Shown piece after piece: positions 7,534 to 57,404 of a stretch of 64,000 bases of DNA. Origin of the DNA: Ascoidea asiatica JCM 7603 (Eukaryota; Fungi; Ascomycota); NCBI GenBank assembly GCA_001600695.1, contig BCKQ01000001.1, positions 1,042,426 through 1,106,425 on the forward strand, read 5' to 3'. The notes under the pieces are model-generated. The model saw only the letters and a program-made list of their open reading frames with translations, did no database searches and had not been told where the DNA came from. A program made the position numbers and the translations under genes. Positions within the stretch are counted from its first letter, which is position 1. The number at the start of each line of letters is the position of its first letter.

Positions 7534-7541
7534 TTACCCGG
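7534..7541 (+). promoter_or_regulatory. Reb1-like site (TTACCCGG) in the GEF1 promoter
   Basis: Exact Reb1 consensus about 190 bp upstream of the ATG; an identical site lies at 56323-56330, far upstream of BEM1. Confidence 0.45.
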
Positions 7542-7727
7542 GCGGAAAGTCAAACTAGCTCCAAAACACCTTTTTTGATTTCGAGTGTAAGCACCGAATC
7601 TGAGAAGTAATGCCAGTTAGAACAGATAAGTCAAGAACAAGATCCAGATGTAAAAGTGCCATAGATAGCTATTGGTTATTATTCCTCAATTCAATTCAGA
7701 TTATAATCTTGCTTTTTTACAAGTAAT

Positions 7728-36997: not shown

Positions 36998-39913
36998 ATG
37001 TCTTCGAAAATTGAGAAATTATATAGGTGTTTATATTGTACAAAAACTTATAAAAGAAAAGATTATTTAACAAGACATTGTGAAAATCATAAAAAGATTA
37101 AACCATTTTATTGTGAAATATGTAATCTAGGTTTTGCAAGAAAAGATTTGTTAGAAAAGCATTTCAAATCAATAACTCATAAAAGGAAAAATTCTGTTGA
37201 AAAAGATTCAATTCTGATAAGTAACAATAATCAAATTAGCAATAATAAAGTTAACAATAATCTGAATGAAAATATAAAAAATAATACAATCGATAATACT
37301 CAATTTCCTAATCAATTAAACAATTCAATAACAAATAATTCAATTACAAGTCATAATCTTGTACCAATTTCTCCAAATATTATTATTAATCATGACAAGA
37401 ATGACACCCTAAATAATAACATAAATAATAACATAAATAATAACATAAATAATAACTTAAATCCTATAAACTCCTTAAACAACTTAAATAACCTACATAA
37501 TCCGAGTAACCTGAATCATTTAAATCACCTAAATCATCTAAATAATTCAAATAACTCAAATAATTCCAATAATTTGCCAAATTTATCCAATATCAATATA
37601 AACTCCCCTTCCAATATAGATATAGAATTAATGTTAAATTTGGATAAATTTTCAAATTTATCAAATGGTCTAGAAGATAATTATGGTTGGTTATTTGGTC
37701 AACAAGATTCAAACATAAATTTAAATTCAAATACAAATTCAAATTCAAATTCAAATCTTGCCAATTGTAATATAAATAATCACAATAACAATATCAATTA
37801 TACTAATAATATAAATAATAGTAAATATATTAATGATAACTCCTTTAACTTAAACAATGCCTTTTTACCTTCAAAAAATTCTCAAACTTCTCTTAACTCA
37901 ATTCCTTATTCAAATTCGAACTCAAATTCAACTCGTTCAGATTCTATTTCAAGCCAACAGTCCATGAATTCTGATTTTTATATTAATAATGAAAATTTTC
38001 TAATTAATGATTCAACTAGACTAAATATCTTAAATATTCTACAATTAAATTTAAATTTCAATCCAAATTTTAATTCAAACTCAAATTTAAGTCAAATAGA
38101 TTTAATTAATTTTAGAAACTACTTATCTTTATCTGATTTAAATTCATTTTTACAAATTTATTGGACTAATTTTGACCCAGTTTATCCAATAATTCATAAA
38201 CCAAGTTTTAATCCAAATTCTTCTGATGTTTACTTTATAATTTCAATTTTAACTATTGGAATGTCCTTCTCAAATCAAAATATTCACTACTTATTATCAA
38301 TTGAAATCCATAAATTTTTAAAATTAAATTTAATGTCTCAAATGGAAAAATTCCAATCTTTTGAAATTATACCTTTAGACTTAATCCAATCTATATTATT
38401 AACTAATTTTTATAATTTATTTTTAGGTAATTATTATCAACAACAATCTGTGAATTTATATAATGGTGTTGCCGTTAATCTTTTAAAAAAATTAGGTTAT
38501 TTTGATAATTTAATCGAACCTCAAATTAATGAATCATTAGTTAATACTTTACCATTATATAAATGGCAAGATTGGATAAAATTTGAAACAATAAAAAGAT
38601 CAACTTTTTTCTGTTATTTGGTTGATTGTCAATCTTCTTTTTTATTTTGTCATAGCTCTTCAAGTGATATATCTGTATTTGATATTCAATTGGAATTGCC
38701 TTGTACTGATGTTGTCTGGAATGCAAAAAACCCTCAAACTTTCTTAAAAGAGTATTTGAAACAACCAAGAGAATTACGTTCAAGAAATAAATTAAGTGTA
38801 AATGGGGGTAGATTATATTCAAGTTCTTCAAATAATGATGATCTAACTTCAAATGGTATACTAATGCCAAATGTTAGAAATGAAGGTAGATGGCCTAATT
38901 TTTTATGGAGTTTAAGAAGATTGATGCAACCGTATAAAAAAAATCAAAAAGAATATCCATTAAACTGTTTTTCTCAATTTTCAAGATTTGTCTTTTTGCA
39001 TGGTTTATTAAGTATTGTTTGTGATTTGAGAAAAAGAAATATTTTAGATTTAGGAATTGTTTCAAAAAAAAGAATGAATGAATTAGCTGCAAAAATTGAG
39101 CAATCTTTCTTGAGTTGGAGAAGTTATTTTGATACTCATATTTCTGAAACAAATGCATTTTCAGTATCTAAAAATATTCGTAAAAAAAATGATTTTAAAA
39201 TTGGAATTTTAAATGATTATGGTACATCTCCAATATTTTGGGCAAATATAACGATTTTTGAAATTGGTTTATTGGGGTTATATTGTAATATAGGGACATT
39301 GATTCAACATACAAAAAACATTCAGTTTGCATTAAAATCATCTGCAAAAAATAGCGAAATCTCAATTGAATCACCTGGAAGATTGAGATATAATGCAGTT
39401 GAAATAAATAAAAATAAGTTAATGCTAAGTAATTGGGCAAAATCTAAAGATGGATTTTGTAGTTTAATAGAAGCATGTAAGTTTTTGAGAATGGTTTTTA
39501 ATAATAAAGATATTGTTAAAACTATTGCGCATGCTCCATTTTCTGTTTATATTTCTTCAGTTATCTGCTGGCTATATGAATCTAATTTTAATTCGGAATC
39601 AATATGTAATTCAATTAAAATCAAATCCTTAGGTGAAATACAGGCGCTCTCAGGTGTTAAATCTATTGAATCTGGTGCATCAAGTTATCTAAGTCAAATT
39701 TTAGATGATCCTATTACTACTAATGGTATAGAAGATAAAGGGTCGGCATTAAAGCAGGAAAATGAATCGATTAATTCGAAAAGAGAGTTGATAGTTGAGT
39801 TAGTGTATTATTCTATAATTCATTTAGATCAATGCTCAAAGTGGGAAAACGTCAAAGGCTGCATTGCTGATCTTTACAATCTAATCTGTCAATCAAGAGG
39901 AGAAGTAATTTGA
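36998..39913 (+). CDS. C2H2 zinc-finger transcription factor with fungal-specific TF middle-homology domain
   Basis: Two fingers (CLYC...RKDYLTRH..NH; KPFYCEIC...RKDLLEKH...H), Asn-rich linker, YWTNFDPVYPIIHKPSF, WQDWIKFETIKR, LELPCTDVVWNA. Confidence 0.9.
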   Translation: MSSKIEKLYRCLYCTKTYKRKDYLTRHCENHKKIKPFYCEICNLGFARKDLLEKHFKSITHKRKNSVEKDSILISNNNQISNNKVNNNLNENIKNNTIDNTQFPNQLNNSITNNSITSHNLVPISPNIIINHDKNDTLNNNINNNINNNINNNLNPINSLNNLNNLHNPSNLNHLNHLNHLNNSNNSNNSNNLPNLSNININSPSNIDIELMLNLDKFSNLSNGLEDNYGWLFGQQDSNINLNSNTNSNSNSNLANCNINNHNNNINYTNNINNSKYINDNSFNLNNAFLPSKNSQTSLNSIPYSNSNSNSTRSDSISSQQSMNSDFYINNENFLINDSTRLNILNILQLNLNFNPNFNSNSNLSQIDLINFRNYLSLSDLNSFLQIYWTNFDPVYPIIHKPSFNPNSSDVYFIISILTIGMSFSNQNIHYLLSIEIHKFLKLNLMSQMEKFQSFEIIPLDLIQSILLTNFYNLFLGNYYQQQSVNLYNGVAVNLLKKLGYFDNLIEPQINESLVNTLPLYKWQDWIKFETIKRSTFFCYLVDCQSSFLFCHSSSSDISVFDIQLELPCTDVVWNAKNPQTFLKEYLKQPRELRSRNKLSVNGGRLYSSSSNNDDLTSNGILMPNVRNEGRWPNFLWSLRRLMQPYKKNQKEYPLNCFSQFSRFVFLHGLLSIVCDLRKRNILDLGIVSKKRMNELAAKIEQSFLSWRSYFDTHISETNAFSVSKNIRKKNDFKIGILNDYGTSPIFWANITIFEIGLLGLYCNIGTLIQHTKNIQFALKSSAKNSEISIESPGRLRYNAVEINKNKLMLSNWAKSKDGFCSLIEACKFLRMVFNNKDIVKTIAHAPFSVYISSVICWLYESNFNSESICNSIKIKSLGEIQALSGVKSIESGASSYLSQILDDPITTNGIEDKGSALKQENESINSKRELIVELVYYSIIHLDQCSKWENVKGCIADLYNLICQSRGEVI

Positions 39914-40384
39914 GTGCCAAATGTTTAAGCAGAAAATATGAAATATATTAAACAGGATATTTAGACTTCATCAAGTCAAATAATTGAATCTTGCCAATTA
40001 GATTTTGGCCTAAGATATTTCTTCAAGGAAAAATAATATTAAATTATATCGACCAAGTTTTTTAATGTAAAGAAAAATTTGCAAGCAAATGGTTTTCAGT
40101 TGAATTTTCTATAAACTCATTCTTGTATAGTTTTTTTAAATGGCTTTTTTTTTCTATAAGTAAAATAATGAATGGTTGAATTTTTGATAAGAGAGTTAAT
40201 CAATTTTCGATAATAAAAGATTTATTTCTGTTAATTAACGTTAAATTATTTAAATAGAAGAAGGAATAGTAATTAAAGCCACTTAAAAAAAATTAAAATA
40301 AAAAAGATACATAAAGTATTAAAGAAAGTAGAAAAAAGATTAAAAAAGATTAAAAAAGACAAATAAAAAGAAATATAAGCAGGT

Positions 40385-42046
40385 TTATGCTGAAACCTTT
40401 TCATCTTTACCATCGTAAGAAACCGCTACAGCTTCTAAAGATTCAAGAGATGGATCAGGATGATCAGATGCTTCTAATGGAGTTCCATCATCTGCATAAA
40501 CTTCATCGACTTTAGTGTTTGGTTGGATGGTTTTTGAAGGGAAAACATAATTTAGAATTAAAACCAACGAACCAGTTAGTAAAACACCCCAAATATAAGA
40601 TATTTTATAAATCCAAGTCCAGAAACCTAAAGTTTTACTATTAACATCAGCACCCAACCCAGGCAAAAGAAATACGGTACCAAGAAACCAAGCAACAACA
40701 CTTCTCCAATCAACACCATTCCAAAACCAGTAAATTGATTCAGGAGAATCAATATAAAGATCTTGAAGTAAAACTTTTCTTTTATAAATAATATAGTATT
40801 TTGCAATAACAATTCCTGTTAAAGCAGAACAAAAACAACCCCAACCACTACCAAAAATAACAACAGCTTTTGCTGAAGATAAAATTTTCCATGGCCAAAT
40901 AAGTAAACCAACAGTCATTACAATCCAAGAGCCTCTTCTAATATTAATATATTTTGGCCATAAACCAGTCATATCCATTGAACTTGAAAGAGTATTCAAC
41001 ATTAAATTAATTGCCAATTGTTGTAAGAAAAAAGCTAAACCTCCAAAAAAACAACCAGCTCTTGCAGCAGAAGAATTGTTTTCATGATCTTGAATTCTTC
41101 CAATTAATACAACTGGATTCCAAATAATTTCACCAAAAATATCATAAGCAGCAGAAGTTGTTACAACACCAATAACAGTTGAAAATGTTAAAGCACATGG
41201 AGCACCAAAAAATTGAGGAAATTTTGGAGAATTTTTATTTTTTGCATAACGAGTAAAATCAGATTGTCCAAGAATACCAGTACCAGTTGTTCCAACAACA
41301 GACATAATACCTTGAACACAAGCCCAACCTAAATCACCAGAACTTGAAAAACTTTCAGAACCTTCATTAAACATTGAACCAGCACCACCAGCAGTTTTAA
41401 CACAATAACCAATTAAACCAAAAAAAGCACCAAGAGTAATAAAAAAAGTAATTCTAAAAAAATATTGTAAATTTTCTGGAGCTAAGAAAGTACATGGAAA
41501 CATGAATACAAAATATAATATTAAACCAACCAAATCTCTTGAGGTTATACCATTTTTGTTATTAAGAGAATCCCAAGTTGCAAAAGAAGGAGATAAAGCT
41601 GATAAACAAGTTCTCATTGCTTGACCACCATAGTATGCTTGAACCCCAAACCATATAGTACCAGTAATAATTCTAATAATAATTGGAAAATAAGCACCTT
41701 TTATACCAAAAGTTGCTCTTGAAAAAACTGGAAAACCAATATGATGATGAGAACCAATCCAACCCATTACAACAGCCATTATACCATATATAATACCAGC
41801 GGCAACACTACAGCAGATACTTTGTTTAGCAGAAAGACCAAAGCCCATTAAACTTGAAGCAGTTGTCCAACCTGAAATACTTACACCTTCAATAATCCAA
41901 TAATTTACATAAGCAAATAAACTCCAGGTTCTTCTTTTAGGTGGAATTGGAATAATATCTCTATTAGTTAAAGAATCATTTTCATAATAAGAATTTTTAT
42001 CTTTTGGAACTTGAAGTTTTTCTTTCCAAACTTCCCAATCAACCAT
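40385..42046 (-). CDS. NCS1 nucleobase/allantoin/hydantoin-type permease (Fur4/Dal4/Thi7-like subfamily)
   Basis: NRDIIPIPPKRRTW, HIGFPVFSRATFGIKG, IWFGVQAYYGG, QSDFTRYAK, IIWNP, PKYINIRRG, WPWKILSSA, YWFWNGVDWR. Confidence 0.92.
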   Translation of the reverse strand: MVDWEVWKEKLQVPKDKNSYYENDSLTNRDIIPIPPKRRTWSLFAYVNYWIIEGVSISGWTTASSLMGFGLSAKQSICCSVAAGIIYGIMAVVMGWIGSHHHIGFPVFSRATFGIKGAYFPIIIRIITGTIWFGVQAYYGGQAMRTCLSALSPSFATWDSLNNKNGITSRDLVGLILYFVFMFPCTFLAPENLQYFFRITFFITLGAFFGLIGYCVKTAGGAGSMFNEGSESFSSSGDLGWACVQGIMSVVGTTGTGILGQSDFTRYAKNKNSPKFPQFFGAPCALTFSTVIGVVTTSAAYDIFGEIIWNPVVLIGRIQDHENNSSAARAGCFFGGLAFFLQQLAINLMLNTLSSSMDMTGLWPKYINIRRGSWIVMTVGLLIWPWKILSSAKAVVIFGSGWGCFCSALTGIVIAKYYIIYKRKVLLQDLYIDSPESIYWFWNGVDWRSVVAWFLGTVFLLPGLGADVNSKTLGFWTWIYKISYIWGVLLTGSLVLILNYVFPSKTIQPNTKVDEVYADDGTPLEASDHPDPSLESLEAVAVSYDGKDEKVSA

Positions 42047-42795
42047 TTTTAATAATTCGTGTTATATGAATTAGATTTATATTTTATCTTGTGATCCCTT
42101 TCAAGAAAAGGAAAACGATGAAATAAAAAGAGGATCTCTTTTTTTTGCTAAAATAATGAAAAATTTAGCACCGAAGAATGCAGTGGGCAAAGACAATTCT
42201 AGAGAATGAAATAAGAATAAGAATGAAACAATGGTTGAATATAAAAGAAGGAATACTAATAAGATTAAGAAAGCTGGACAAATTAAGCATTATTTATATA
42301 TTTTTTTTCCTTAAAGTGAAGGATAAGCTTGATAAATTATAACCAACGTTACTATTATTAATGTTAATTAACAGCAGTACTATTAAAGTACATACAGTAA
42401 ATAGTTACTTCAGTAATGTGAAGGTGATTAGGTTTTTGACTAAATTCTAAAATGTACTATGAAAGTTGTACCAAGTATACTGTACCCAAACAATATCAAC
42501 AAGGTTCTTAACTACTCGAGTTTACCAAGCTCTATTTAGCTCTAATCAAGTCAGATAAATCACAGTACTTCACTACCACGCCTTTCGATAAGAATTTGAG
42601 TTGAAGAGCAGAATAAAAAATAAAATAAGAACAACTGAAGAGCTTTCAAGTGAAGATCTGAAAACGAGAAATGAAATAAATAACGTTGAATAGCATAAAT
42701 AACTCGAATAAGATACTGAATAACACGAATAACGTTAACAACTTCAATAGCCTGGACAACAACTGCAGCCAGCCGATTTTGAGCTTTTGAAGCTC

Positions 42796-42823
42796 GGTGG
42801 GCACTACAACAAGAGTGCCCACC
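42796..42823. promoter_or_regulatory. Perfect 10-bp inverted repeat GGTGGGCACT-N8-AGTGCCCACC (cluster motif pair)
   Basis: Seen directly; lies in the divergent NCS1/AKR promoter. Confidence 0.7.
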
Positions 42824-43000
42824 CAAACACAAACTCAGCAAAGAACCAACATAGCTTGAGGAAGAAGAATAGGAAAAAGCACAAGAAAAACAAAAAGCTT
42901 TAGCTGCTTCTGAAGCGCGAAAATACTTAAGAAGTGACAATAGATTACTCAATTGTTTTTCCAGTTATTTTTTCTGTTTCTGAGCTTCAATTTTGGCTGC

Positions 43001-43030
43001 GCCCACCAGAATTTGCTCGCTGGGTGGGCA
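43001..43030. promoter_or_regulatory. Second pair of cluster motifs, GCCCACC...GGTGGGCA
   Basis: GCCCACC at 43001-43007 and GGTGGGCA at 43023-43030. Confidence 0.65.
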
Positions 43031-43720
43031 CATCTTTATTTAGTCTGTTTTCCACCAAAATCTCAGAATCCAAATATTTTACTTTATTTATTTCAGTTTA
43101 GTTTTGTTTATTCTAATTTTGCTTTACCCTTTAACTTTTCTCTGATTATTCTCTTTATCTAAATCCTCAATTGGATATTCAAAGATCAAGATTTGTTTAT
43201 TTTTCCTAAGTTTTTTGGAGTTTCTGCTTATCTTTACTTCCTCAGAACCTCAAAACATAATCAAAGCGAAAAAAAAACAGACGACTATTGAATTTAACTG
43301 CTCTGTACTAAAATAAACTATTCTGCCCACCATGGTTTATTATAACTTATCACGATAACGTTAACATAATTTCTGCTTGGTTTTGTTTCAAATTTATTTA
43401 ATAACTTCTTTACCCTTTTACAATTGGTTAACTTTAGTCTCATATCAACGGATTTTAAAATCCTCTTTAATATTAACATTAAAAAAAAATTTGTTAGGCT
43501 ACTAAAATACATAATCCAAAAAAATATAAAACTATAAGAATATATACATTTTCACCCTATTTAAATTATTTAGTACTTCCTCATATATATTCATTCTTTT
43601 GACTTTATAAAAAGAAGTAATTGTTATAACTTCTTCCCATTTTTTTGCTATTCCTTTTGCTTTTAAACTACTTTTCTTAATTTTCTTTTTGAAGTATCTA
43701 AATTTTTTCAAATTATAATA

Positions 43721-44671
43721 ATGTCAGTAAAAACAATTTATACAACTCTTAATAATGGGGTTAAGATGCCTGTGTTTGGTTTAGGTACTTGGCAATCAAA
43801 GCCAAATGAAGTTTCAAAAGCTGTTGAACATGCTTTAAAAAATGGTTATAAACATATTGACACAGCTACAATTTATGGTAATGAACATGAAGTTGGTCAA
43901 GGTATTAAGAATAGTAAAATTGATAGAGATCAAATTTTTATAACAACAAAATTATGGAATTCAATGCATGATCCAAAAGATGTTCCAATCGCTTTAGAAA
44001 AAAGTTTAAAACAATTAAATTTAGATTATATTGATTTATATTTAATGCATTATCCTTGTGCAAATGATAGAACTGAATTTGAGAAAAGTGGTAATTCTAT
44101 AAAAGTTGATATTGATTATATTGATACTTGGAATGCAATGGAAAATTTATTAAAAACTGGCAAAGTTAAAGCAATTGGTATTAGTAATTTTTCACTTTCA
44201 GAATTAAAAAATTTATTAAAAAATTGTAATATTAAACCACAAGTTCATCAAATGGAAATGCATCCATATTTAAAACAAGATGATTTTTTAAAATTTCATA
44301 ATGATAATAATATTCACGTAACTGCATATTCTGCTTTCGGTAATCAAAATTCTTCATATCAACTTAATGGTGAACCAAAAATCTTACAACATCCAAAAGT
44401 TTTACAAATTTCTGAAAAACTAAATAAAACTCCTGCTCAACTTTTAGTTTCTTGGGCAATTCATAGAGGTACTTCTATTATACCAAAATCTATAACACCA
44501 AAAAGAATTGATGAAAATATTCTTGGTCAAAATTTAATTTTAAGTGATGAAGATTTTGATACTATTTCTGACTTAGGTTATTCTATAAGATATTCTGATT
44601 TTGGTCCATTTGTTGGTTATTGGTATTACTCAGATTTAGAATGTCCAGGAAAAAAGCCAAAAGAAATCTAA
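43721..44671 (+). CDS. NADPH-dependent aldo-keto reductase (Gcy1/Ypr1-like)
   Basis: GLGTW, HIDTA.IYGNE (Asp/Tyr), FITTKLWN (Lys), DLYLMHYP (His), KAIGISNF, IPKS. Confidence 0.93.
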   Translation: MSVKTIYTTLNNGVKMPVFGLGTWQSKPNEVSKAVEHALKNGYKHIDTATIYGNEHEVGQGIKNSKIDRDQIFITTKLWNSMHDPKDVPIALEKSLKQLNLDYIDLYLMHYPCANDRTEFEKSGNSIKVDIDYIDTWNAMENLLKTGKVKAIGISNFSLSELKNLLKNCNIKPQVHQMEMHPYLKQDDFLKFHNDNNIHVTAYSAFGNQNSSYQLNGEPKILQHPKVLQISEKLNKTPAQLLVSWAIHRGTSIIPKSITPKRIDENILGQNLILSDEDFDTISDLGYSIRYSDFGPFVGYWYYSDLECPGKKPKEI

Positions 44672-46038
44672 GTTAAATTATGAATTGATAAAAACAATTT
44701 TTGTATTTTTTTTTCTTAACTAAAATTTGCATCCACTTAATTCTAATTTACTTACAAAATAGATCTGAATAAATATATTCCTTTACATAGTCTCCTATTT
44801 TTTTCAAACTTAGCTGTTAAACACATTTTGAAAACCAATTGAATTTCTTTTTTTTTCTTTTCTTACACAATACGTCACAATAAATTATCATCTCCGAATA
44901 AAACATAGCGTTAGTATTCTTTAAAACCAAACTATTACTATAAAGTTTGAAACAAGTTAAAATTCGCTTCAGAAGTTATTATGTAGAGCAAATTACTACT
45001 GAATTGCAAATTTAAATGGCTGCTTTCCATAGACAGAGGTATTATTTACAATAATCCTTAGTGCACGTTTTATTTTTTAATGTCATTTTTATAGTCCATT
45101 TAACTCGGATAGCCTTGAAATTTTTGATAACCTTGATAACCTTGATATTTTTGAAAACTGTGAAAATCTTGAAAATATACTTCAAGACAATGCGCCCCAC
45201 CAAAAAGTTCTTTTAAACTTCTAAACAGCTACATCCATAAATATTTATGAAAATCAAAACAAAATATAATGGATATTTGCTGTAATTCAAGAGGATATTA
45301 TTTTTATGGCTTTACTATCCAGTAGAAAGTTGCCGATTTTCAAGTTCACCTTTCATAAAATAATTATTTCGGCTAATTCACTCTTTGGAAAAACATTATT
45401 CAAAACTTTCAGACAAAATGAAATCAAAAGAACAAAAAAAAACACAGCAATTTTTATAAAAATTGAATTAAACTTGAATTAAGTTTTTCGGTACTTTTAT
45501 GAGCCCGTTAAAATTCAGCTTTATAGTAGATAACAATTTGAAAAAACAGATTAGAGTAGCATCACTTTTATTATAAATTGCCAAAATAAGGAGCATATCT
45601 CTATTTTACTTTAAATGCAAACTTTTCTCTTCAAATTTGTACTAATAATTGAAAATCATAAAATCAGTTTGTAAACATAAAGTTAAAATTAAGATGTAAA
45701 AATGGACTTTTTGCGTTTTCTCAATTAGTGATAGAAATAAAGTAACGTTAAACGACTCGGTTGTGATTTTATATTATTGCCCTAATAAACAATATAGCCG
45801 ATTGCCTACCAATAATAGCCGATAGCCATTTGAATTGTTGGCTTGTCAAAAGAGTTAATTTTTTATACTTATAAAGTGAATAATAGTCGTATTAAAAGAT
45901 GTATTTTGAATATAAAAAGAATTACAAATATTATAATAGAGTAAAATTTAAGTGAAATAGAAAAGCAAATAGTAAAAATCAGGTAAAAGAACAAAATGGA
46001 AAGACACATACTATATAAACACAAATGAAAAATCTTTT

Positions 46039-47472
46039 TCATTTTTTAACTTGAATAACAATTTTTCCTCTAGAAGTACCACTGGAAAGCTTTGAAAAAG
46101 CCTGTTTAAAATTATGAAAATCATAAACACTATCAATAAAGATTTTTACCTTTCCTGTTTCCAACCAAGGAACACATTCATTCCAATCTGACTGGGACAG
46201 TGTGATTCTTCTGTAATTAAATATACCATTTTTACCATAAAATAACTTCCACTTTGAAAACATTTCTCTGAAAGTAACCTTTATATTAGATAAAATGAAA
46301 TCCTTTCCATTCATATTTGAAGTATTAAATTTACTATCACCGACAATGGTGACATAAAGAGAACTAGAACCTTGTGGATTAATTAGTAATTTATTAAGAT
46401 GAGGGAATAAATCACAATTACCAATAAAGTCACAAATCAAATCAAATTGCAAATTCAAAGCTAAAATTGGAGCTGAAATATCTTTATAAATTTTATAATT
46501 AATTGTATTTGAAATGTTTGAAAACCCTTTAATAAATGTTTTAGAATTTTCTGAACAAACAAGAACAATATTTTCCGGTTTAACTTTAATTACATTGATT
46601 AGCAATTGAATTGCACAAAGTCCAACAGATGTTGCACCTCCAATGATTAAAACTTTAGAATCTTCATTTAAAACTAAACCTTTGTTATTGAATAAAGTAT
46701 CACTAGCCGTTTTTAATACAACATATGCACTTCCAGCTTCATTAAACGTAATACCATTGGAATTAAAACCCGAGTTTATATCTGTATTTGATTTTAGTTT
46801 AAACTTGACGATATCTAATTTATGATCATTAAAATCAACCAAAAGATATTTTCTTAAAGATCCATTGAAGGTGAAAGGAGCTACATATCCACCACAAATG
46901 TTATCTCCAACAATGAATTTAAATTCATTTTCATCAACTTTTTTACCAATTTTTATAATTTTACCAGAAAAATCAAAACAAACTCCTTTCGGTTTACTAC
47001 CAAAAACATAAGGATTTGCAAGACCAGAAGAAACTAAATCAACTGGATTTAAACCAACTGAATAAATCTCAATTAAAATCTTATTTTCATCTTTACTTAC
47101 TAATGTCCCATCTGTATTTAGTTCAATAGTATCTTTTATTAACTCAAAACCAGAATTCCAATTTCTATAATAGATTGCTTCATTTTTCAATATAGATAAA
47201 GAATCAGTTACGGTTTCTCTAGTATTTGGTTCTGGAACAGTAGAATTTGGTAAAAATGGGTTTATAGAAGCAGAAGGAATTAAATCATTGACTGGAATAC
47301 CTTTTGTAGTACTCGAAGGAATTGAGTCAGCTGGATTACTTGGTTTTGATGTAGTAGTAGGTCCAAGAGGAGCAATCGAAGCTGTAGTATTTGAATTAGA
47401 ATTGCTTTGATCTAAAATAGGAGCAGGTGTTACTGAAGGTAAAAAAGAATTGTTTGTAACTTTATCATCCAT
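46039..47472 (-). CDS. Zn-independent MDR/quinone-reductase-like oxidoreductase (Yim1/Ast1-like) with S/T/P-rich N-terminal extension
   Basis: VGLNPVD, DFSGKI..IG, VLIIGGATSVGLCAIQL, FDLICDFIG, KVKIFIDSVY, SRGKIVI. Confidence 0.8.
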   Translation of the reverse strand: MDDKVTNNSFLPSVTPAPILDQSNSNSNTTASIAPLGPTTTSKPSNPADSIPSSTTKGIPVNDLIPSASINPFLPNSTVPEPNTRETVTDSLSILKNEAIYYRNWNSGFELIKDTIELNTDGTLVSKDENKILIEIYSVGLNPVDLVSSGLANPYVFGSKPKGVCFDFSGKIIKIGKKVDENEFKFIVGDNICGGYVAPFTFNGSLRKYLLVDFNDHKLDIVKFKLKSNTDINSGFNSNGITFNEAGSAYVVLKTASDTLFNNKGLVLNEDSKVLIIGGATSVGLCAIQLLINVIKVKPENIVLVCSENSKTFIKGFSNISNTINYKIYKDISAPILALNLQFDLICDFIGNCDLFPHLNKLLINPQGSSSLYVTIVGDSKFNTSNMNGKDFILSNIKVTFREMFSKWKLFYGKNGIFNYRRITLSQSDWNECVPWLETGKVKIFIDSVYDFHNFKQAFSKLSSGTSRGKIVIQVKK

Positions 47473-47835
47473 TATTAAAAAAGTTTAGTTATTTTAAAGC
47501 TTGAGTAATAACAATTGATCATAAAAGATCCAAAAATAAAAGAATCAAATATCTTTTTTTTAGTATAAATAACTCCTTTATTTTCTGTACTAGTATGATT
47601 CTTCCTTAAGTATTGAATATTCACCAAAACTAGAAATTAGTTTTCTAGTACTGCACTGTAGTGCGTAAGTAAGGAGTGAGGAGTATGAGGAGTGAACGAA
47701 AATGAGCAGTTCTTTATTTGTTTATGGTATCGGGTATCCGGTAATATCGGTTATATATTAATAATTTTTATTGAACATACTGTATGTAACTATTAATATG
47801 GAACAAAAGGAAATTTAAATGAGTCAAATTAATTA

Positions 47836-49322
47836 TTAACAAAGTTCTTTTTCGAGATCTTTCAAGGTTTTTGAGAATCTTTGAGCAGCTTGATCCATTT
47901 GTTCGAAAGAAGCAGAAGCAAAAGTAGCTCTAAACCCAGCGGCTTTTAATTTTTCTGAAGGTGGAACAATAAACCATCCACCTTTGGCCAATAAAACTTT
48001 ATTAGAAATTGAATTTTCATAAACTAATTCTTCTAATGTACTAGCCCATTCTTCATCAGATAAACTACTGTCAGGTTTCTTAAATTTTTCAATATTAAGG
48101 GTGATCCAAAGGAACATTCCACTTTCTGGGCAATTCCATGAACATAAATCAGTTGGTAAATATTTATCAAAAGATTTCATTAATGAGTCTCTTCTTTTAG
48201 TATAAGATAATCTTATATGTTCTAACCATTTAAAATAACCAAGTTCACCCCACTGAGATAAGGTTGAAAATAATAATAATTGAGAAATACCGGAAGCAGA
48301 TTGAATATTAACTTCATTTAATCTTATTAATTTTTCAGAAAATACAGCATTTGAAGTTATCCAACCAGTTCTTGAACCAGGCAACATAATTTTTGAGAAT
48401 GAATCTAATCTTATAACTCTACCATCAGTATCAATACTTAATATACTCGGAGTTAAGTTATCTAAAAAGTTTTGAATTGAGAATTCTTTCAAAGGTTCAC
48501 CCAATTGAAGAAAATAATAAGGGTCATCTTCAATTATTATAATATCATGAGCTTGACAAATTTTGTAAAATTCTTTTCTTCTTTCTAATGTCATTGTTGA
48601 ACCAGTTGGATTTTGACCAGTTGGCATCATATAAATAGCTTTGGGTTTTTTTAAATCTTTATATAAGGTTGACCAATTATTTAATTGGTCATCCAAATCT
48701 TTATTTATAATTCCACCTAGATCTAAAGAAACTGCAACAACTTTCAAACCTAAAGGTCTTAAAGTTTCCATTGCAGTTGGATAGGTTTGCTCTTCTAATA
48801 AAATAGTATCTCCAGGATCAGTGATAGTTCTAAGAACTGCATCTAAAGATTGAGTTGAACCTGCAGAAATTACAGAATTCCAACCTTTATAAGGAGGATT
48901 ATGAATTAATTTTGTATTATCAAAAGTCCATTTACTTAAATAAGATGAACCGAGTGCTGGACCATATTGTAAAGCTTCGTACAAAGAAGAATTTGGATCT
49001 TCACCTAAAGTTGCAGTTTTGAACTCAGTGAAATCAGATTCAACAGTTGGATATTTATATTTAATTTCAGCACATGGAAAGACAGAAGGATGTGGTAAAC
49101 CACCACCTAAAGATACAATTCCTGGAGTCTTAAGACGAGGATGCATCATTTTAAGTGCGGATGGCTAAAATTTGCAATTTAAATAGTAAAATTTTATTAG
49201 TTTCATTGAACTTATAGTAAACTAAAAGATGATATTGTGAAAATTTAAAAATTTTAGAATAAAATACATACTTTACGACCCTTTGCCTGTTTTGATAAAT
49301 ATTGTGTCCAGTCGATTTCCAT
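47836..49322 (-). CDS. PLP-dependent aromatic/2-aminoadipate aminotransferase (Aro8/Aro9-like); 2 exons (49322-49272, 49164-47836), 459 aa
   Basis: Exon 1 MEIDWTQYLSKQAKGRK joins PSALK across a GTATGT...AACTAAT...TAG intron. Motifs: SLGGGLP, ALQYG, MPTGQNPTG, IIEDDPYYFLQ, RLDSFSK (PLP Lys)..PGSRTGW. Confidence 0.9.
49165..49271 (-). other. Spliceosomal intron (107 nt) of the aminotransferase gene
   Basis: GTATGT donor at 49271, AACTAAT branch-like element, TTTTAG acceptor; phase-0 in-frame join. Confidence 0.85.
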
Positions 49323-49530
49323 TTTGAAGTATATTTAAGTGGAATATTCTTTAGTAATTTCACTAGTAAATTAACGAGAGATGATTTTTCAGATGTTGAA
49401 AAGTTTTAAAAATTACAAAAAATTAAAATAAAGTAAAATAGACAAAAATATATACGAATGAGTGAAAATATATTTAATATATAAAGCATGAATTATTTCA
49501 ATTGATCATTTTTTGATTTGAAATACTTTA

Positions 49531-49537
49531 TGAGTCA
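49531..49537. promoter_or_regulatory. Gcn4-type site TGAGTCA upstream of the aminotransferase
   Basis: Exact heptamer about 210 bp upstream of the ATG at 49322. Confidence 0.4.
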
Positions 49538-50017
49538 GTCAGTACTTTAAGATCCAGTTCGAAACTTTAGAAGTGAAACAAATGATTGGTGCAATACAAG
49601 CTAATGATAAACAATAATAATAATATCGGATGCTTTAGCCTGAGCCAGAGAGATCTGAAAAGTTTCTCAAGTGCTTTATCGTTCGGAAGTCAGAGTCGAC
49701 CACAGAAACAGACCGTTGCCAGGCCCTGCAACCCTGGACCGGCGGGTTGGCTGATTGGTTGCTTTTCTGCCGTCAACAGTTAAAAGCTTATCCGCCCACA
49801 GCAGTAAGCAGCAGTAGACTTATATAATCGATTGCGGGGTTAATATGCTTCGTTTAGGTGATCGACCCAAGTTCCTCTTCTGGAAATATATCCGCATAAA
49901 CTACAATCAATAGCTACAAAACTGCTTTTATTAATACTGTACTTTATTTTTTATATTCTTATTTTTTCTTTATAGCTTGTATTTAATATGATAAATTTGA
50001 ATAGACGTCTTTATGGA

Positions 50018-51028
50018 TTAATAAGTAGCATTTAATCTCATGTCAAGGTAGTCTTTAGCGTTAATAGGTTCATATTTCTTAGGATTTGCTTCTGAAAATG
50101 TTCCTGGAAGACAATCAACTGTAACTTCTTTGTTTGCAGAAACAAAAAAAGGAATTGAATAACGAGTTCTGGAAACTCCAGTTTCTGAATCAATTGGTGG
50201 TGCTGTTACTCTGTGTAAAGTTGATTTCAACATATCATTTGACCACCTCATTAAAAAATCTCCAGTATTAACAACCAATGATCCTGGGATATATGGCGCC
50301 GAAACGAAAGATCCTTGCTTATATGGCTCTTCAACTTGTAATCCTTCACATGAATCTTGTAATAGCATCGTTAAAGTTCCAAAGTCAGTGTGAGCAGCAA
50401 TTCTTTCTGCTTTTCCTTTTTTTAGATCTTTTTCATCTGTTGGAGGATAATGTAATAATCTTAATTGATTATCTGAATCTGAATGATAGGGAATGAAAAA
50501 TTCTTCATCTAAATTTAGCCCTAGAGCAATTGCTCTTAAAAAATGTTTAGATACATTATTAGATATTTTGAAATATTCAGTACAAAATTGCTTAAAACCA
50601 GGAATATCTTTTTCATCAGGCCAAATATTGACATATTTTGTATTATTTTCATTTCCAGAATCAAAACTTTCTTTAACATCGGGAACTTTTCTTAAATCTT
50701 GAATTTGCTCCTTATCAAAAACCATTTGTACAACTTTTTCTTTACCTATACCTGACCAACCTCTATGATGAGCGCCATTTTTAGGATGTGAACATTTTTT
50801 TTTTTGACTTTCATCTAATTCGAAAAATTTTGCACTCCATTGAAACATTAAATCACTTTTATCTTTTGGAATTCCATGATTAATAATATACATGAATCCA
50901 ACTTCTTTCATAACTCTAACCATTTCTTTACCAGTGTTTATTTTTCCTTCTTCTTCACCATCTAAAAATGGTTGAAAATCAATCACTGGAACGTGAAACT
51001 TTTGACTATACCCTTCATTTAGTGCCAT
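50018..51028 (-). CDS. Fe(II)/2-oxoglutarate dioxygenase (DIOX_N + 2OG-FeII_Oxy; isopenicillin N synthase/thymine-7-hydroxylase-like fold)
   Basis: VPVIDF, GFMYIINHGI, LRLLHYPP, HTD...H iron triad (AHTDFG; STLHRV), RYS 2OG-binding motif. Confidence 0.92.
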   Translation of the reverse strand: MALNEGYSQKFHVPVIDFQPFLDGEEEGKINTGKEMVRVMKEVGFMYIINHGIPKDKSDLMFQWSAKFFELDESQKKKCSHPKNGAHHRGWSGIGKEKVVQMVFDKEQIQDLRKVPDVKESFDSGNENNTKYVNIWPDEKDIPGFKQFCTEYFKISNNVSKHFLRAIALGLNLDEEFFIPYHSDSDNQLRLLHYPPTDEKDLKKGKAERIAAHTDFGTLTMLLQDSCEGLQVEEPYKQGSFVSAPYIPGSLVVNTGDFLMRWSNDMLKSTLHRVTAPPIDSETGVSRTRYSIPFFVSANKEVTVDCLPGTFSEANPKKYEPINAKDYLDMRLNATY

Positions 51029-51741
51029 CTTTATTTATGTTATTTATATTGAATTAATAATTTATCTGATTATTTGATTATCGGTTATTATGAAATTGAA
51101 AGAAAGCCAACAAAAAAAACAGTTTTTGTGGTTAGTTATATATAGAAAATTTTTAATGTAATTCTAAAAATATAACTTTATGTAATAGATAAACAATAAA
51201 TAAAACTAGAACAGAGGTGTAAGCAAATTAAAAAGAAAAAATATATATCGAACCATTAAATGTGTTTAACAAAAGTCAAATAGGAAAGGTTCTTCAGAAA
51301 ACGATAATTAACAATCAAATCACCCGAATAATATATCTCCTGAGTTTACTCCACCAGAAACAGAGCCTATTTTCAGGTAAATATATAAAATAGTAATTAA
51401 TCTAATTACTTTTTTATTTTATATTGTTTATTAAATACTGCACTGAAAGAACTAAAAGCTCTACAACCAAATGAGAATGAAAATAATGACACCATTAAAT
51501 TCACTTATTATTAAAATCCTGAGATGAGGACCTCAAAAAAAGTTGATTTGATCTCGTTTTCATTGAAGAGTAATTACCAACCTATTAACATTATTCTTAA
51601 TATTTTCCTTAATAATAATTATTATTATTATTATTATCAGTAACGCTATTTTATTTTATCTCCAGTTATCTTTACTCTCTTTTTAACTCTTCTTTTTTTA
51701 CTTCGACATCGGCTTCAAACCTTATGAAACAGAGGTTTTGC

Positions 51742-51765
51742 TGGTGGGCACAGACGTGGTGGGCG
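51742..51765. promoter_or_regulatory. Direct repeat of the cluster motif TGGTGGGC x2 in the divergent dioxygenase/hydantoinase promoter
   Basis: TGGTGGGCA at 51742 and TGGTGGGCG at 51757. Confidence 0.65.
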
Positions 51766-52353
51766 TGGTGGAGGAGAACAAAACTCCCAAGTCGCTGACA
51801 ATCAACAACACAATTTTGCATAGATGGATATCGATAGATGTGAATATACTAAGTCTAAAGAGATACGAATATCAGTTTATTTTGAATCCACTCACACTTA
51901 CAACTGAATCATGAATCAATCAAGTATCTTATAGAGAAGCTTTAGTCTAAGGTTATACAGGAAGTAAGAAACAAAGCAAAAAGCCAATCCTTCATAATGA
52001 TAACTCTAATTGTTGTTGAGAGAGTAAAGAGGAAAGATCAAAATTGATTATTTGCATCGATGCATAAAAATTAGAATAAATTTACTTTTTTTTGAACTTT
52101 TTGAACTTCGTTTTTAAAGGCAAGTGGAGTGGAAGCTGAAGCAACTTGTAATTTAAAGAAAAAATAAATCTTTTACTTTTAACATACTGTATATATTCAT
52201 ATAAATAATACTTTTTTTAGTCTTTTGAAATAATCTCCTGATTCAAATTTATTTAGGAAACAACACTTCATTTCAATATTATTCCTTTAATATCTAAATC
52301 TTTAGAGAATATTATATATATAAATAAATTAAAAAAAGGAAAATTGAAAAGAA

Positions 52354-55300
52354 ATGGAAAAGACAGAAAAGAAATTATTAATTGGTGTTGATGTAGGAGG
52401 AACGAATACAGATTCTGTTCTTTTAGACCCTTCTGGATTTGATAATGAACAAACAAGAGGAATTCTAGCTTGGCATAAGTCTAATACAACTCCAGATGTT
52501 TCTGATGGTATTCAATCCGCAATTTCAAGTTTATTGGATCAAGTTAAAGATGTTAAAAAATCTCAAATTTCCGCTGTTACAATTGGAACAACTCATTTCA
52601 TAAATTCAGTAATTGAACAAGATAGAGCAAGATTAGAAAAAGTTGCAGTTTTAAGATTATGTGGTCCATATTCAAGAAATATTCCTCCATTTTCTGATTT
52701 TCCAAAGGGTTTAAAAAATATATTAAATGGTTATATTGGTTATATTAATGGTGGCTATCATGTTGATGGTAATGAAATTAAAAAAATAAATGAAAATGAA
52801 ATAATTTTTCATTGTCAAAAAATTAAAGATTTAAATATTAAAACAATTGCCATTAATAGTGTTTTTGCTCCTATGAGTCCTGATCATGAATTAATTGTCC
52901 ATGATATAATTTTAAGAGAAATTCCAGACTCAAAAATAGTTATGTCGCATACAGTTTCTGGTATCGGTTATTTAGAAAGAGAAAATGCAACAATTTTAAA
53001 TGCTTCGATTGTTAGATTTGCTGAGAAAGTTATTTATTCTTTTGAAACTTCAATAATGAAAATTGGCCTAAATTGTCCAGTTATGCTTACTCAAAATGAT
53101 GGAAGTGTAATTTCAACTTCAGAAGCTTTAAAATCACCAATTAAAACATTCTCTTCCGGAGCTACAAATTCAATGAGAGGTGCTTCTTTTTTATGTTCAA
53201 ATGATAAATCAATTTACGGAAACTCTGTTATGGTTGTTGATGTTGGTGGAACTACAACTGATGTTGGACTTTTATTACCCTCAGGTTTTCCTCGTCGATC
53301 TTCTTCATATTCCATTGTTGGTGGGGTAAGAATGAATTTTTCAATGCCTCATGTTGAAAGTATTGGTTTAGGTGGTGGATCTATTGTAAGATTTGATGAT
53401 TCTAAAGCTGGTTCATTAACCGTTGGACCTGATTCGGTGGGCAATGAAGTTATAAAAAAGGCAATTGTGTTTGGCGGTAATAAAATAACTGCTTCTGATT
53501 TAACAATTTCAATTGGTTTAGATGAAGATGCAAATAATGATATTTATCAACTTGGAAATCCATCACTTGTATTAAATAAATTTTCAGATTCTATTAAGAA
53601 TAAATTTAAAACTGATATTAAATTAAAACTTGAAAAAGTAATAGATAGAATGAGGACTTCAGCTGAAGATTTACCTGTTTTACTTGTTGGTGGAGGTTCC
53701 TTCATTGTTCCAAATGAATTAGAAGGAGCTTCAAAGGTTATTAGACCTCCGTTTTTTAATGTTGCAAATGCAATTGGTGCTGCAATTGGAAAAATATCAT
53801 CAAATGTTCATCTTATAAAATTTTTACCTCCTGGAGGAGAAACAAAAGAAGAAGTGGTGGAAAAATTGAAAAAAGAGGCTTTAGATAAAGCAATTTCAAA
53901 AGGAGCTAAAGAAGATACAATAATTTTAGTTGATCTTTCTTATGAACCAATTCCATATGTTGATAATACATATCAATTTTTAGTTAAAATGGTTGGAGAT
54001 GTTGATTATTCAAAAATGAAAGAAATTTTCAAATCAAATTATAAATCTAATAAGAAGAAAATAGATTCAAATTCTTCCAAAATATCAGTTATCAAAGATT
54101 CTAGTTTTAAAGATGAAAAAATTTCAGAAGAAACTAAAGAAATTGACTACTCCATATATAAGCCGATAATTAATAGTGAAAAAGAATGGCTATTAAGTGA
54201 ATTAGATTTAGAATTTATTTCAATAGGTTGTTATATTCTAGGATCGGGTGGAGGAGGAAATCCATATTCTTCATATTTACATATTAGAAATTTGCTAAGA
54301 AATGGAGATATTATAAAAATTATTGATGTTGAAAATATTTATAAATATACGAAAGGTAAAGCTAGTATAATTTCAGTTGGATATGCAGGATCACCTACAG
54401 TTTCTCATGAACAATTAAAAGGTGATGAATTATTAGTTTGCCATGAATATATGTCAAGGTTTCATGGAGGAAGTATGGATTTAGTATTTCCACTAGAAAT
54501 TGGAGGATCCAATGGATTAACAGGATTTGAATTAGGATGTTCATCACAGTTGAATGTACCTATAGTTGATTGTGATTTTATGGGTAGAGCATATCCAACA
54601 CATTGGCAAACATTACCAGTTGTTTATCAAGAAGAAGGAACATGTTTTTATGCACCAACAGTTATGAGTAATGGAAATGGGAATACTATAATATTTGCGG
54701 AATCTAAAAGTGATTTATTATTAGAATTAACTATGAGAGCATCATTGTCAGAATTTGGAGCAACAGCCGGAGTAATGAATCCTCCAATGAAAAGTGAAGA
54801 AATGGATTTGAAAAGTATTCATAGATCAATTTCATTAGCTTGGAGAATTGGTAGAGGAGTTTTAATAGCTAGACAAAAAAGTGAGATTGATAAGATTGGA
54901 GAAAGAATTTTAGAATCAGTTAATAATAATGGAAAATTAATATTTTCAGGTAAAATTATTGGAGTTGAAAGAAAATTAATCAAAGGACATAGTTATGGAG
55001 AAGTTATAATTGAAGAAATTGAAGGTATTAAAGGAAATAAAAAAAAATTGAGAATTCCATTTAAAAATGAAAATATATATTGTGAATTAGAAGATTTTGA
55101 TGGTACAAATAAAGAAATAATTTGTTCAGTTCCAGATTTAATTTCAGTTATTGATGCCGATACTGGAGAAGCAGTTGGAACGCCAGATTATAGATACGGA
55201 TTATTAGTTTTTGTTCTCGGAATTGCACCTAGTAATAAATGGACAGATAGTGAAAAGGCATTAAGTATTGGAGGGCCAAAAGGATTTAAATTTGATGAAA

Positions 55301-55377
55301 TTGAATATAAGCCAATTAGTAAATACAGTAAACCTAAATCGGTTATTGAAGAGTATTATAAAGAAACTGGGTTTTAA
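52354..55377 (+). CDS. Hydantoinase/oxoprolinase-A domain fused to a C-terminal DUF917 domain
   Basis: IGVDVGGTNTD, IGTTHFIN, LERENATILNA, TFSSGATNSMRGA, VVDVGGTTTD, SIGLGGGS, VANAIGAA; then GCYILGSGGGG, GSPTV..E, EIGGSNG, DCDFMGRAYP, FKNEN, VPDLI, YRYGL. Confidence 0.88.
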   Translation: MEKTEKKLLIGVDVGGTNTDSVLLDPSGFDNEQTRGILAWHKSNTTPDVSDGIQSAISSLLDQVKDVKKSQISAVTIGTTHFINSVIEQDRARLEKVAVLRLCGPYSRNIPPFSDFPKGLKNILNGYIGYINGGYHVDGNEIKKINENEIIFHCQKIKDLNIKTIAINSVFAPMSPDHELIVHDIILREIPDSKIVMSHTVSGIGYLERENATILNASIVRFAEKVIYSFETSIMKIGLNCPVMLTQNDGSVISTSEALKSPIKTFSSGATNSMRGASFLCSNDKSIYGNSVMVVDVGGTTTDVGLLLPSGFPRRSSSYSIVGGVRMNFSMPHVESIGLGGGSIVRFDDSKAGSLTVGPDSVGNEVIKKAIVFGGNKITASDLTISIGLDEDANNDIYQLGNPSLVLNKFSDSIKNKFKTDIKLKLEKVIDRMRTSAEDLPVLLVGGGSFIVPNELEGASKVIRPPFFNVANAIGAAIGKISSNVHLIKFLPPGGETKEEVVEKLKKEALDKAISKGAKEDTIILVDLSYEPIPYVDNTYQFLVKMVGDVDYSKMKEIFKSNYKSNKKKIDSNSSKISVIKDSSFKDEKISEETKEIDYSIYKPIINSEKEWLLSELDLEFISIGCYILGSGGGGNPYSSYLHIRNLLRNGDIIKIIDVENIYKYTKGKASIISVGYAGSPTVSHEQLKGDELLVCHEYMSRFHGGSMDLVFPLEIGGSNGLTGFELGCSSQLNVPIVDCDFMGRAYPTHWQTLPVVYQEEGTCFYAPTVMSNGNGNTIIFAESKSDLLLELTMRASLSEFGATAGVMNPPMKSEEMDLKSIHRSISLAWRIGRGVLIARQKSEIDKIGERILESVNNNGKLIFSGKIIGVERKLIKGHSYGEVIIEEIEGIKGNKKKLRIPFKNENIYCELEDFDGTNKEIICSVPDLISVIDADTGEAVGTPDYRYGLLVFVLGIAPSNKWTDSEKALSIGGPKGFKFDEIEYKPISKYSKPKSVIEEYYKETGF

Positions 55378-57296: not shown

Positions 57297-57404
57297 AAAA
57301 TCTTTTGGAAAATCTTTTGGAAAATCTTTTGGAAAACCTGTTGAAAAACCTGTTGAAAAACTTCTTGGAAAACTATTTGAAAAACATTTTAGAAAGCTTT
57401 TTAG
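57297..57404. repeat. Degenerate 12-bp minisatellite x9 (AAAATCTTTTGG consensus)
   Basis: Units in order: aaaatcttttgg x3, aaaacctgttga x2, aaaacttcttgg, aaaactatttga, aaaacattttag, aaagctttttag. Confidence 0.8.

Follow-up and report, generated by a model that had tools for sequence, protein, structure and literature searches.

The described system closest to the locus reported here is the hxn nicotinate regulon of Aspergillus nidulans (PMC5746545, PMC8478523, PMC9304392), a catabolic cluster for an N-heterocycle that has a regulator combining C2H2 fingers with a PF04082 domain and an enzyme with DIOX_N and 2OG-FeII_Oxy domains, similar to thymine-7-hydroxylase (T7H). Its promoters are bidirectional and contain G-rich predicted regulator sites, and its composition varies between lineages. 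When compared by architecture, a gene cluster of the budding yeast Ascoidea asiatica JCM 7603 appears to share these features. It lies at positions 36998-55377 of a 64-kb stretch of contig BCKQ01000001.1 (hereafter the window; ~27% G+C), which comes from a 20.3-Mb genome assembly. Its core genes are predicted to encode a C2H2/PF04082 transcriptional regulator, a Fur-type NCS1 permease, a T7H-like 2-oxoglutarate (2OG) dioxygenase, an aldo-keto reductase (AKR), and a protein in which Hydantoinase_A and DUF917 modules are fused. The cluster is real and functionally coupled, because the linkage of its genes is conserved across genera and subphyla and a cis-element is conserved in its promoters. 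With a probability of roughly 0.6, it is a conserved and co-regulated catabolic (or salvage) cluster whose substrate is a small, planar N-heterocycle or cyclic amide that the cell imports.

Several properties separate this cluster from the hxn regulon, an analogue that the initial annotation of this DNA had overlooked. Its transporter belongs to the NCS1 family, whereas those of hxn are MFS carriers (HxnP/Z), and the Pfam matches of its open reading frames (ORFs) include none of the families of HxnS, HxnT, HxnV, HxnX, HxnW, HxnM and HxnN. Ring opening would be assigned to the Hydantoinase_A-DUF917 fusion instead, and the AKR is a core member. In contrast to this cluster, which lacks all three genes, the hxn clusters of 14 budding yeasts contain hxnT, hxnV and hxnM (PMC8478523). 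The HxnR-type regulator architecture, two C2H2 fingers followed by PF04082, is nevertheless present. Among other known clusters, DAL is characterized by allantoinase, allantoicase and ureidoglycolate lyase, and URC by URC1, URC4, URC6 and urea amidolyase; no DAL or URC family was found among the Pfam matches of the cluster ORFs. Similarly, the HyuB-type module that defines classical hydantoinase operons was not found in the cluster. A full-text literature search, with subscription-only papers outside its coverage, returned no description of a matching cluster, and the Kuraishia genome paper is silent too. The initial annotation of this DNA had proposed a composition unlike that of known yeast clusters, which is consistent with these comparisons, and the cluster is apparently undescribed.

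Seven uninterrupted, intronless ORFs occupy the 18.4 kb of the region, according to the ORF list and Pfam. The regulator gene (36998-39913, plus strand) encodes 971 aa with two N-terminal zf-C2H2 fingers and a Fungal_trans domain (PF04082), and is convergent with the permease gene (40385-42046, minus strand; 553 aa; Transp_cyt_pur PF02133, E 2.8e-85, 287 bits). The latter is divergent from the AKR gene (43721-44671, plus strand; 316 aa; Aldo_ket_red, E 1e-51). A second divergent pair consists of the dioxygenase gene (50018-51028, minus strand; 336 aa; DIOX_N and 2OG-FeII_Oxy) and the fusion gene (52354-55377, plus strand; 1007 aa; Hydant_A_N, Hydantoinase_A, S-Me-THD_N and S-Me-THD_C). Between these pairs, in tandem with the dioxygenase gene on the minus strand, are an ORF resembling medium-chain dehydrogenase/reductase (MDR) or quinone oxidoreductase proteins (46039-47472; 477 aa; ADH_zinc_N_2) and an Aro8/AADAT-type aminotransferase gene (47836-49149; 437 aa; Aminotran_1_2). 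The linked genes are non-homologous and functionally compatible, with five different families of enzyme, transporter and regulator represented. The initial annotation had named six of the seven ORFs, all of which are intact and free of introns at the positions given, and had missed the MDR-like one. It had also described the genes as lying mostly in divergent pairs, which is correct for the permease-AKR and dioxygenase-fusion pairs, but not for the remaining genes, which are tandem or convergent.

Conservation of linkage was assessed at fifteen loci, for which DNA was fetched around homologues of the cluster proteins. Orthologue identities were taken from tblastn of the window proteins against these loci, and the intron-containing genes of the Cryptococcus, Niveomyces and Aspergillus loci were compared as separate tblastn segments. 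The complete core was found at five other loci and part of it at four. In Kuraishia capsulata, the regulator gene is followed by a divergent dioxygenase-fusion pair, two unrelated genes, a divergent AKR-aminotransferase pair, a second dioxygenase gene and the permease gene. In Ogataea haglerorum, the regulator gene precedes a divergent permease-fusion pair and the dioxygenase and AKR genes, and in Brettanomyces nanus the order is regulator, fusion, dioxygenase and a divergent AKR-permease pair. A metagenomic yeast contig has both the dioxygenase-fusion and the AKR-permease divergent pairs, followed by the regulator gene. In these four yeasts, the five-gene core spans 9-17 kb. In Aspergillus pseudodeflectus all five families recur, with both divergent pairs composed as in the window, although its PF04082 regulator is unrelated to the A. 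asiatica one. Less complete arrangements occur in Pachysolen tannophilus (regulator in two inverted pieces, dioxygenase, permease and AKR), Scheffersomyces coipomensis (regulator and a divergent permease-fusion pair), Niveomyces insectorum (a divergent AKR-permease pair, then the dioxygenase) and a Cryptococcus species (a divergent permease-dioxygenase pair adjoining four tandem PF04199 'cyclase'/amidohydrolase genes).

Flanking genes are different at every locus inspected, and therefore the linkage is not residual synteny. Additionally, the high identities indicate that the linked copies are orthologues of the window genes in particular, as opposed to any members of the respective families. 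The homologue lists of the permease and the dioxygenase contain at least 15 orthologue pairs on common contigs, some of which are only 5-27 kb long. Orthologues that are unlinked in all relatives, one of the grounds for rejection stated in the initial annotation, were not what was found at these loci. Identity between the Aspergillus and window fusions is only 36%, whereas other homologues in Pezizomycotina are 45-47% identical, and the one of these that was inspected is unclustered. In Aspergillus, the core of permease, dioxygenase and reductase thus seems to have recruited a different fusion paralogue, an argument in favour of functional coupling. The explanation that the region is a chance neighbourhood of unrelated housekeeping genes can draw on the MDR-like gene, an example of an unrelated gene within the region, but is disfavoured and highly improbable: no fewer than five genomes from different genera, and Aspergillus in addition, group the five families together, the linked copies are specific orthologues, and in several species a rare motif is restricted to the promoters of the cluster.

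Some of these loci have features of their own. The pieces of the Pachysolen regulator (6174-7972 of that locus) correspond to residues 378-634 in forward and 638-952 in reverse orientation, and since they are on opposite strands the gene is apparently split by an inversion in the assembly. A 272-aa Pachysolen gene without Pfam match was considered as an hxnM-like imidase, but is the inverted C-terminal part of the regulator. Two neighbouring genes were considered as clues to the substrate: the Amidohydro_1 gene beside the Kuraishia regulator gene, which encodes an N-acetylglucosamine-6-phosphate deacetylase (7e-71), and the Ogataea A_deaminase gene, which encodes an ordinary adenosine/adenine deaminase. 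Both are absent at the other loci, and because they do not recur they are uninformative in this respect. The four tandem PF04199 genes of Cryptococcus (133-6905 of that locus) may provide an alternative ring-hydrolysing partner in basidiomycetes; among the members of the PF04199 'cyclase' family are metal-dependent formamidases as well as a lactam hydrolase. On the metagenomic yeast contig, positions 1821-5756, just upstream of the cluster, contain a complete oxoprolinase-type gene with both Hydantoinase_A and Hydantoinase_B, and genes for an MFS carrier and a DAO oxidase.

A second line of evidence is the motif GGTGGGC. It occurs eight times in the window, relative to 0.44 expected occurrences, and none of 100 shuffles reached eight. 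Five copies are in the promoter shared by the permease and AKR genes (42796-43331), two tandem copies are in the dioxygenase-fusion promoter (51743-51764), and one is inside the fusion gene. Therefore, seven of the eight are in the two divergent cluster promoters, in agreement with the common promoter motif that had been noted at first. Several copies form inverted or everted pairs, for instance GGTGGGCAC-N10-GTGCCCACC, and two such pairs are in the permease-AKR promoter. The 20.3-Mb genome has 73 GGTGGGCA sites in total; six of these are inside the cluster, and four fall in a 535-bp stretch of the permease-AKR promoter. Upstream of the aminotransferase gene there is just one degenerate copy (TGTGGGCG at 49794), and the regions upstream of the MDR-like and regulator genes contain no GGTGGGC motif.

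The exact heptamer was fixed beforehand from the window, and is present in the cluster promoters of Kuraishia (8 of 11 sites at the locus), Ogataea (2 of 3) and Pachysolen (4 of 4). Cryptococcus has four copies in its 512-bp permease-dioxygenase promoter. The variant GGTGGAG takes this place in Brettanomyces (5 of 9 sites in cluster promoters) and Scheffersomyces (3 of 4), as does GGTGGCG in the metagenomic yeast (7 of 7), such that GGTGGGC or a one-base variant marks the cluster promoters at all six other yeast loci. As a control, a Kluyveromyces lactis locus with a paralogous fusion and permease was analysed, at which the GGTGG motif was not enriched. At this locus (KLLA0D00528g), a fusion 48% identical to that of the window is likewise beside an NCS1 gene and a transcription factor gene. 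However, the regulator is of the Zn2Cys6 type, an M19 dipeptidase is present, the permease is only 28% identical, and there is no dioxygenase or AKR; the K. lactis pair is probably a sister module for another substrate. On the strength of the motif, co-induction of the cluster genes would be expected, and the linked C2H2 regulator may be the factor that binds it.

Two candidates for further members of such a regulon were rejected. The only other close pair of GGTGGGCA sites in the genome (13 bp apart; contig 7, 142395-142415) is in an 8-kb stretch without any ORF of at least 120 aa, and a looser pair on contig 5, flanking DAO and GFO/IDH/MocA oxidoreductase ORFs, is unconvincing. Three close GGTGGGT/GGTGGGA sites are also present on the minus strand at 57003-57037 of the window, inside a 2.9-kb interval (55378-58249) that has no ORF of at least 100 aa and separates the fusion gene from an SH3/PX (Bem1-like) gene.

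The regulator has cluster-linked orthologues in Kuraishia, Ogataea, Brettanomyces, Scheffersomyces, the metagenomic yeast and, in two pieces, Pachysolen, with 34-43% identity over PF04082. Both N-terminal C2H2 fingers are conserved in the four other species that were aligned, and a search of the A. asiatica genome found no paralogue. The AKR is the best-conserved product of the cluster, being 67-72% identical to the linked copies in Kuraishia, Ogataea, Brettanomyces, the metagenomic yeast and Pachysolen. Its catalytic tetrad D-Y-K-H is intact in the translation, its closest solved relatives in the PDB are aldehyde/aldose reductases (~1e-72), and its divergent pairing with the permease gene is repeated in Brettanomyces, the metagenomic yeast, Niveomyces and Aspergillus. 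In comparison, the MDR-like ORF has only weak PDB matches and no homologue at any other cluster locus. It was considered as a cluster member and rejected, since it is not conserved at the other loci and has no upstream motif, and is probably a passenger outside the regulon.

The fusion protein matches four Pfam families in succession, Hydant_A_N (2.2e-29), Hydantoinase_A (4.5e-26), S-Me-THD_N (1.6e-46) and S-Me-THD_C (7.4e-58). Its N-terminal 430 residues form a HyuA-type actin-fold ATPase module, whose PDB matches are N-methylhydantoinase 7hk5 (1e-21), 6yra (9e-16), 5-oxoprolinase, and acetone/acetophenone carboxylase subunits. The gene is single-copy in its own genome, and homologues are widespread in fungi (2914 at E <= 1e-20). 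The best of these, ~60% identical, are from the Pichia-related yeasts Kuraishia, Ogataea and Brettanomyces, and tblastn identified orthologues 56-60% identical in the same three genera, Scheffersomyces, the metagenomic yeast and one further locus (L007). The ATPase module is what the fusion shares with the HyuA/HyuB hydrolases (N-methylhydantoinase, 5-oxoprolinase and caprolactamase). In contrast to these enzymes, there is no Hydantoinase_B module (PF02538) in the fusion or elsewhere in the window, and DUF917 stands in its place; the only copy in the genome is part of an unlinked 1358-aa oxoprolinase-type ORF on contig 10. All NCBIfam equivalog cut-offs are missed widely, the best match being caprolactamase alpha with 98 bits against a cut-off of 1000.

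The DUF917 half has both Pfam halves and the fold of the bacterial DUF917 proteins, but differs in being joined to an ATPase and in being encoded by a eukaryote, alongside dioxygenase and AKR genes of one cluster. In bacteria, DUF917 genes have been reported beside hydantoin-type genes and transporters (bioRxiv 10.1101/2023.09.25.559410). The AlphaFold model of this half (pLDDT 90.7) has a sole structural match, the uncharacterised protein CV_3147 (2O3I; Foldseek E 2e-18, TM ~0.7, 18-19% identity), and as this entry is unannotated, the model gives no indication of catalysis. Overall, the fusion is presumed to carry out an ATP-dependent ring-opening step.

The features most informative on the substrate are in the permease and the dioxygenase. 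The permease has the PF02133 fold and is of the Fur type, scoring 296 bits against TIGR00800, below the cut-off of 353 bits. Alignment with Mhp1 indicates that ligand residues Trp117, Gln121, Gly219-Trp220, Asn314 and Asn318 are retained, with Gln42 replaced by Ser; the Mhp1 residues that stack on or hydrogen-bond to the hydantoin ring have been described previously (PMC4195764). The uridine carrier Fui1 has Leu in place of Gln121; since the permease keeps Gln, its substrate is more likely a free cyclic amide than a nucleoside. Cluster-linked orthologues 56-68% identical are present in Brettanomyces, the metagenomic yeast and Pachysolen, and the permeases at the other three yeast loci (30-40% identical) are a different Fur-type paralogue. 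Paralogues in the A. asiatica genome are only ~30% identical, and the permease is presumed to be the importer of the cluster substrate. One further NCS1 gene is present in the window (30104-31618, plus strand; 504 aa), ~5 kb upstream of the regulator gene. It is probably of the Fcy type, as it was not retrieved by a Fur-type query in the genome search; a transposase-like ORF separates it from the regulator gene, no GGTGGGC is near it, and it is unlinked in the other loci examined.

The dioxygenase has Neurospora crassa T7H as its best PDB match (5c3p, E 6.6e-69). Alignment to T7H indicates that the HxD...H iron triad, the 2OG-binding residues Arg286, Ser288 and Tyr194, the dual-role Arg190, and Phe292 are kept. 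Tyr217 is replaced by Phe, and the aromatic sandwich for a planar base is thereby retained; the roles of these residues, and the occurrence of Phe at position 217 in some T7Hs, have been reported (PMC4787775). Cluster-linked orthologues are 56-71% identical, and no close paralogue was found in the A. asiatica genome. Given the conserved binding residues of both proteins, the substrate may be a planar cyclic amide, for instance a pyrimidine, pyridone or hydantoin, and an N-heterocycle or cyclic amide is the most economical reading of these sequences.

Of the alternatives, the one that survives best is that the cluster is a thymine or 5-methylpyrimidine module, in which a true T7H and a thymine/uracil permease serve thymidine salvage (thymine to 5-carboxyuracil to uracil) and the AKR buffers 5-formyluracil. 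The relationship to N. crassa T7H, with its conserved iron and 2OG ligands, Arg190, Phe292 and an aromatic residue at 217, is as expected for such a module, as is a Fur-type permease with Gln121. The genome also has one Amidohydro_2 gene that could encode an iso-orotate decarboxylase; however, it is unlinked to the cluster, in which the dioxygenase gene has permease, AKR and ring-hydrolase-type genes as its partners instead. Additionally, the residues that hydrogen-bond to the uracil ring are not kept: Asn87, which in N. crassa T7H (PDB 5C3P-5C3S; PMC4787775) contacts O2 of uracil directly, is replaced by His, Glu122 by Asp and Asn294 by Ser. With the dioxygenase as query, N. crassa T7H scores 236 bits, in contrast to 356 bits or more for over 120 fungal proteins, many of which are from Sordariomycetes, the class to which Neurospora belongs. 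As proteins of that class are far closer than N. crassa T7H itself, the dioxygenase is a T7H-like enzyme of a separate subfamily and not an orthologue of T7H. Finally, salvage needs no ATP-dependent enzyme of the ring-hydrolase type, and yet the fusion is a core member. A thymine module is thus unlikely.

A doubtful alternative is that the cluster is a budding-yeast offshoot of the hxn regulon, with an HxnR-like regulator and an HxnY-like dioxygenase, and with a nicotinate derivative, a 2-pyridone, a vitamin B6 vitamer or trigonelline as substrate. Fur-type NCS1 carriers include thiamine and nicotinamide-riboside transporters, which is compatible with such compounds. HxnR has the same unusual combination of two C2H2 fingers and PF04082 (PMC5746545; PMC8478523), HxnY has DIOX_N and 2OG-FeII_Oxy domains with T7H as its closest structure (PMC9304392), and the predicted HxnR sites (GHGGGG; PMC8478523) are G-rich like GGTGGGC and, as in this cluster, serve bidirectional promoters. 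Nevertheless, the cluster has no hxn enzyme family (molybdenum-cofactor hydroxylase, OYE, FAD monooxygenases, SDR, cyclic imidase or amidase) and no MFS carrier, and differs in this from the described yeast hxn clusters with their hxnT, hxnV and hxnM.

An amino-acid-type reading, which is quite improbable, would make the substrate a 5-substituted hydantoin or a heterocycle derived from histidine or ergothioneine; the fusion would free an amino acid, the Aro8-like enzyme would transaminate it, and the AKR would reduce the keto acid. Mhp1 carries 5-aryl hydantoins, and the hydantoin-binding residues are conserved in the permease, and the fusion is a relative of N-methylhydantoinase in its N-terminal half. 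The aminotransferase is moreover a dedicated paralogue that Kuraishia has too: its identity to the copy in the Kuraishia cluster is 61%, relative to 41, 35 and 32% for three paralogues in its own genome. Its best PDB match is Aro8 (3.5e-112), with human AADAT at 7e-67, and the SFSK lysine and NPTG motifs are intact in the translation. However, it is linked only in the window and Kuraishia and is absent from all other clusters examined, whereas the AKR is invariant. The aminotransferase is thus, on this distribution, an accessory and lineage-specific cluster member, and the scheme proposed in the initial annotation, in which the two enzymes strip the amine and reduce the keto acid, fails to explain the AKR. 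The same annotation's ergothioneine/histidine reading drew on the name of DUF917, and is not borne out by the S-methyl thiohydantoin desulfurase model NF058532, against which the domain scores 25.5 bits with a cut-off of 450 bits. An amino-acid-type pathway would also leave the dioxygenase without a role, and no carbamoylase or racemase is linked.

The favoured explanation therefore continues to be a catabolic or salvage cluster for an imported planar cyclic amide or N-heterocycle, and the inferred order of steps would be as follows. The permease would import the compound, and the dioxygenase would hydroxylate the ring or oxidise a ring substituent, comparable to the action of T7H on thymine. 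The ATPase half of the fusion would then activate a ring amide carbonyl in the manner of the HyuA subunits of hydantoinase, oxoprolinase and caprolactamase, while the DUF917 half would replace the missing HyuB and open the ring by hydrolysis. The AKR would reduce a carbonyl intermediate or an aldehyde product. Steps in which an aldehyde is reduced are likewise part of the Rut, URC and Eubacterium nicotinate pathways. Where present, the aminotransferase may serve as an optional downstream means of disposing of an amino-acid product. The regulator, probably as a dimer on paired GGTGGGC(AC) sites of the two bidirectional promoters, would switch the genes on together.

Several observations weigh against this explanation. 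DUF917 has no characterised close relative, and thus a HyuB-like role for it is a guess. Pachysolen has no fusion gene within 10 kb of its cluster, which suggests that the fusion may not be obligatory. Kuraishia and Ogataea have another NCS1 paralogue linked to the cluster, with 35-40% identity to that of the window. With respect to the motif, the degenerate form GGTGG[GAC][CG] was defined from the same data to which it was applied, making the p-values for Brettanomyces, Scheffersomyces and the metagenomic yeast optimistic, and there was no enrichment at the Niveomyces and Aspergillus (Pezizomycotina) loci. Finally, sites for nitrogen-control GATA factors are not significantly enriched in the cluster promoters (GATAAG, p = 0.06; HGATAR, p = 0.63), and use of the substrate as a nitrogen source is therefore plausible but unproven. 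The initial annotation had proposed that an N-heterocycle is used as a nitrogen source; the conserved residues of the permease and dioxygenase are in line with the first part of this proposal, whereas the GATA sites lend no weight to the second.

The 999-aa ORF directly upstream of the regulator gene (33010-36009, minus strand) is intact and has a transposase domain of the DDE_1 (pogo/Tigger) type. Further upstream are two tandem acetyl-CoA-synthetase-like genes with ACAS_N and AMP-binding domains (16075-18072 and 20662-22677, both plus strand), followed downstream by a gene for a DUF92 membrane protein and a HisG-like ORF at 26016-26957.

Budding yeasts have only a small number of known catabolic clusters (GAL, DAL, NAG, nitrate, URC and hxn-like), each of which has been instructive on how pathways evolve and are regulated. 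The cluster described here is present in species that are tractable in the laboratory or used in industry, namely in Ogataea, Brettanomyces, Pachysolen and Cyberlindnera, and its linked regulator and sharply defined candidate binding site make it directly testable. If the favoured explanation is correct, it would provide a function for the fungal Hydantoinase_A-DUF917 fusion, for an orphan Fur-type NCS1 subfamily and for a large subfamily of T7H-like dioxygenases, and the recruitment of a different fusion paralogue in Aspergillus, if true, would clearly exemplify the convergent assembly of a cluster. A broader proposal, put forward tentatively, is that the cluster represents an unrecognised catabolic route for a common heterocycle that is widespread in Dikarya, for instance an oxidative and molybdenum-independent pyrimidine or pyridone pathway, in which the T7H-like dioxygenase would prepare the ring for cleavage by HyuA-DUF917, a new ATP-dependent ring-opening class with DUF917 in place of HyuB. 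If so, this would be the first eukaryotic function for DUF917, and would define a new regulon under an HxnR-like C2H2 factor, with GGTGGGC sites from budding yeasts to a basidiomycete.

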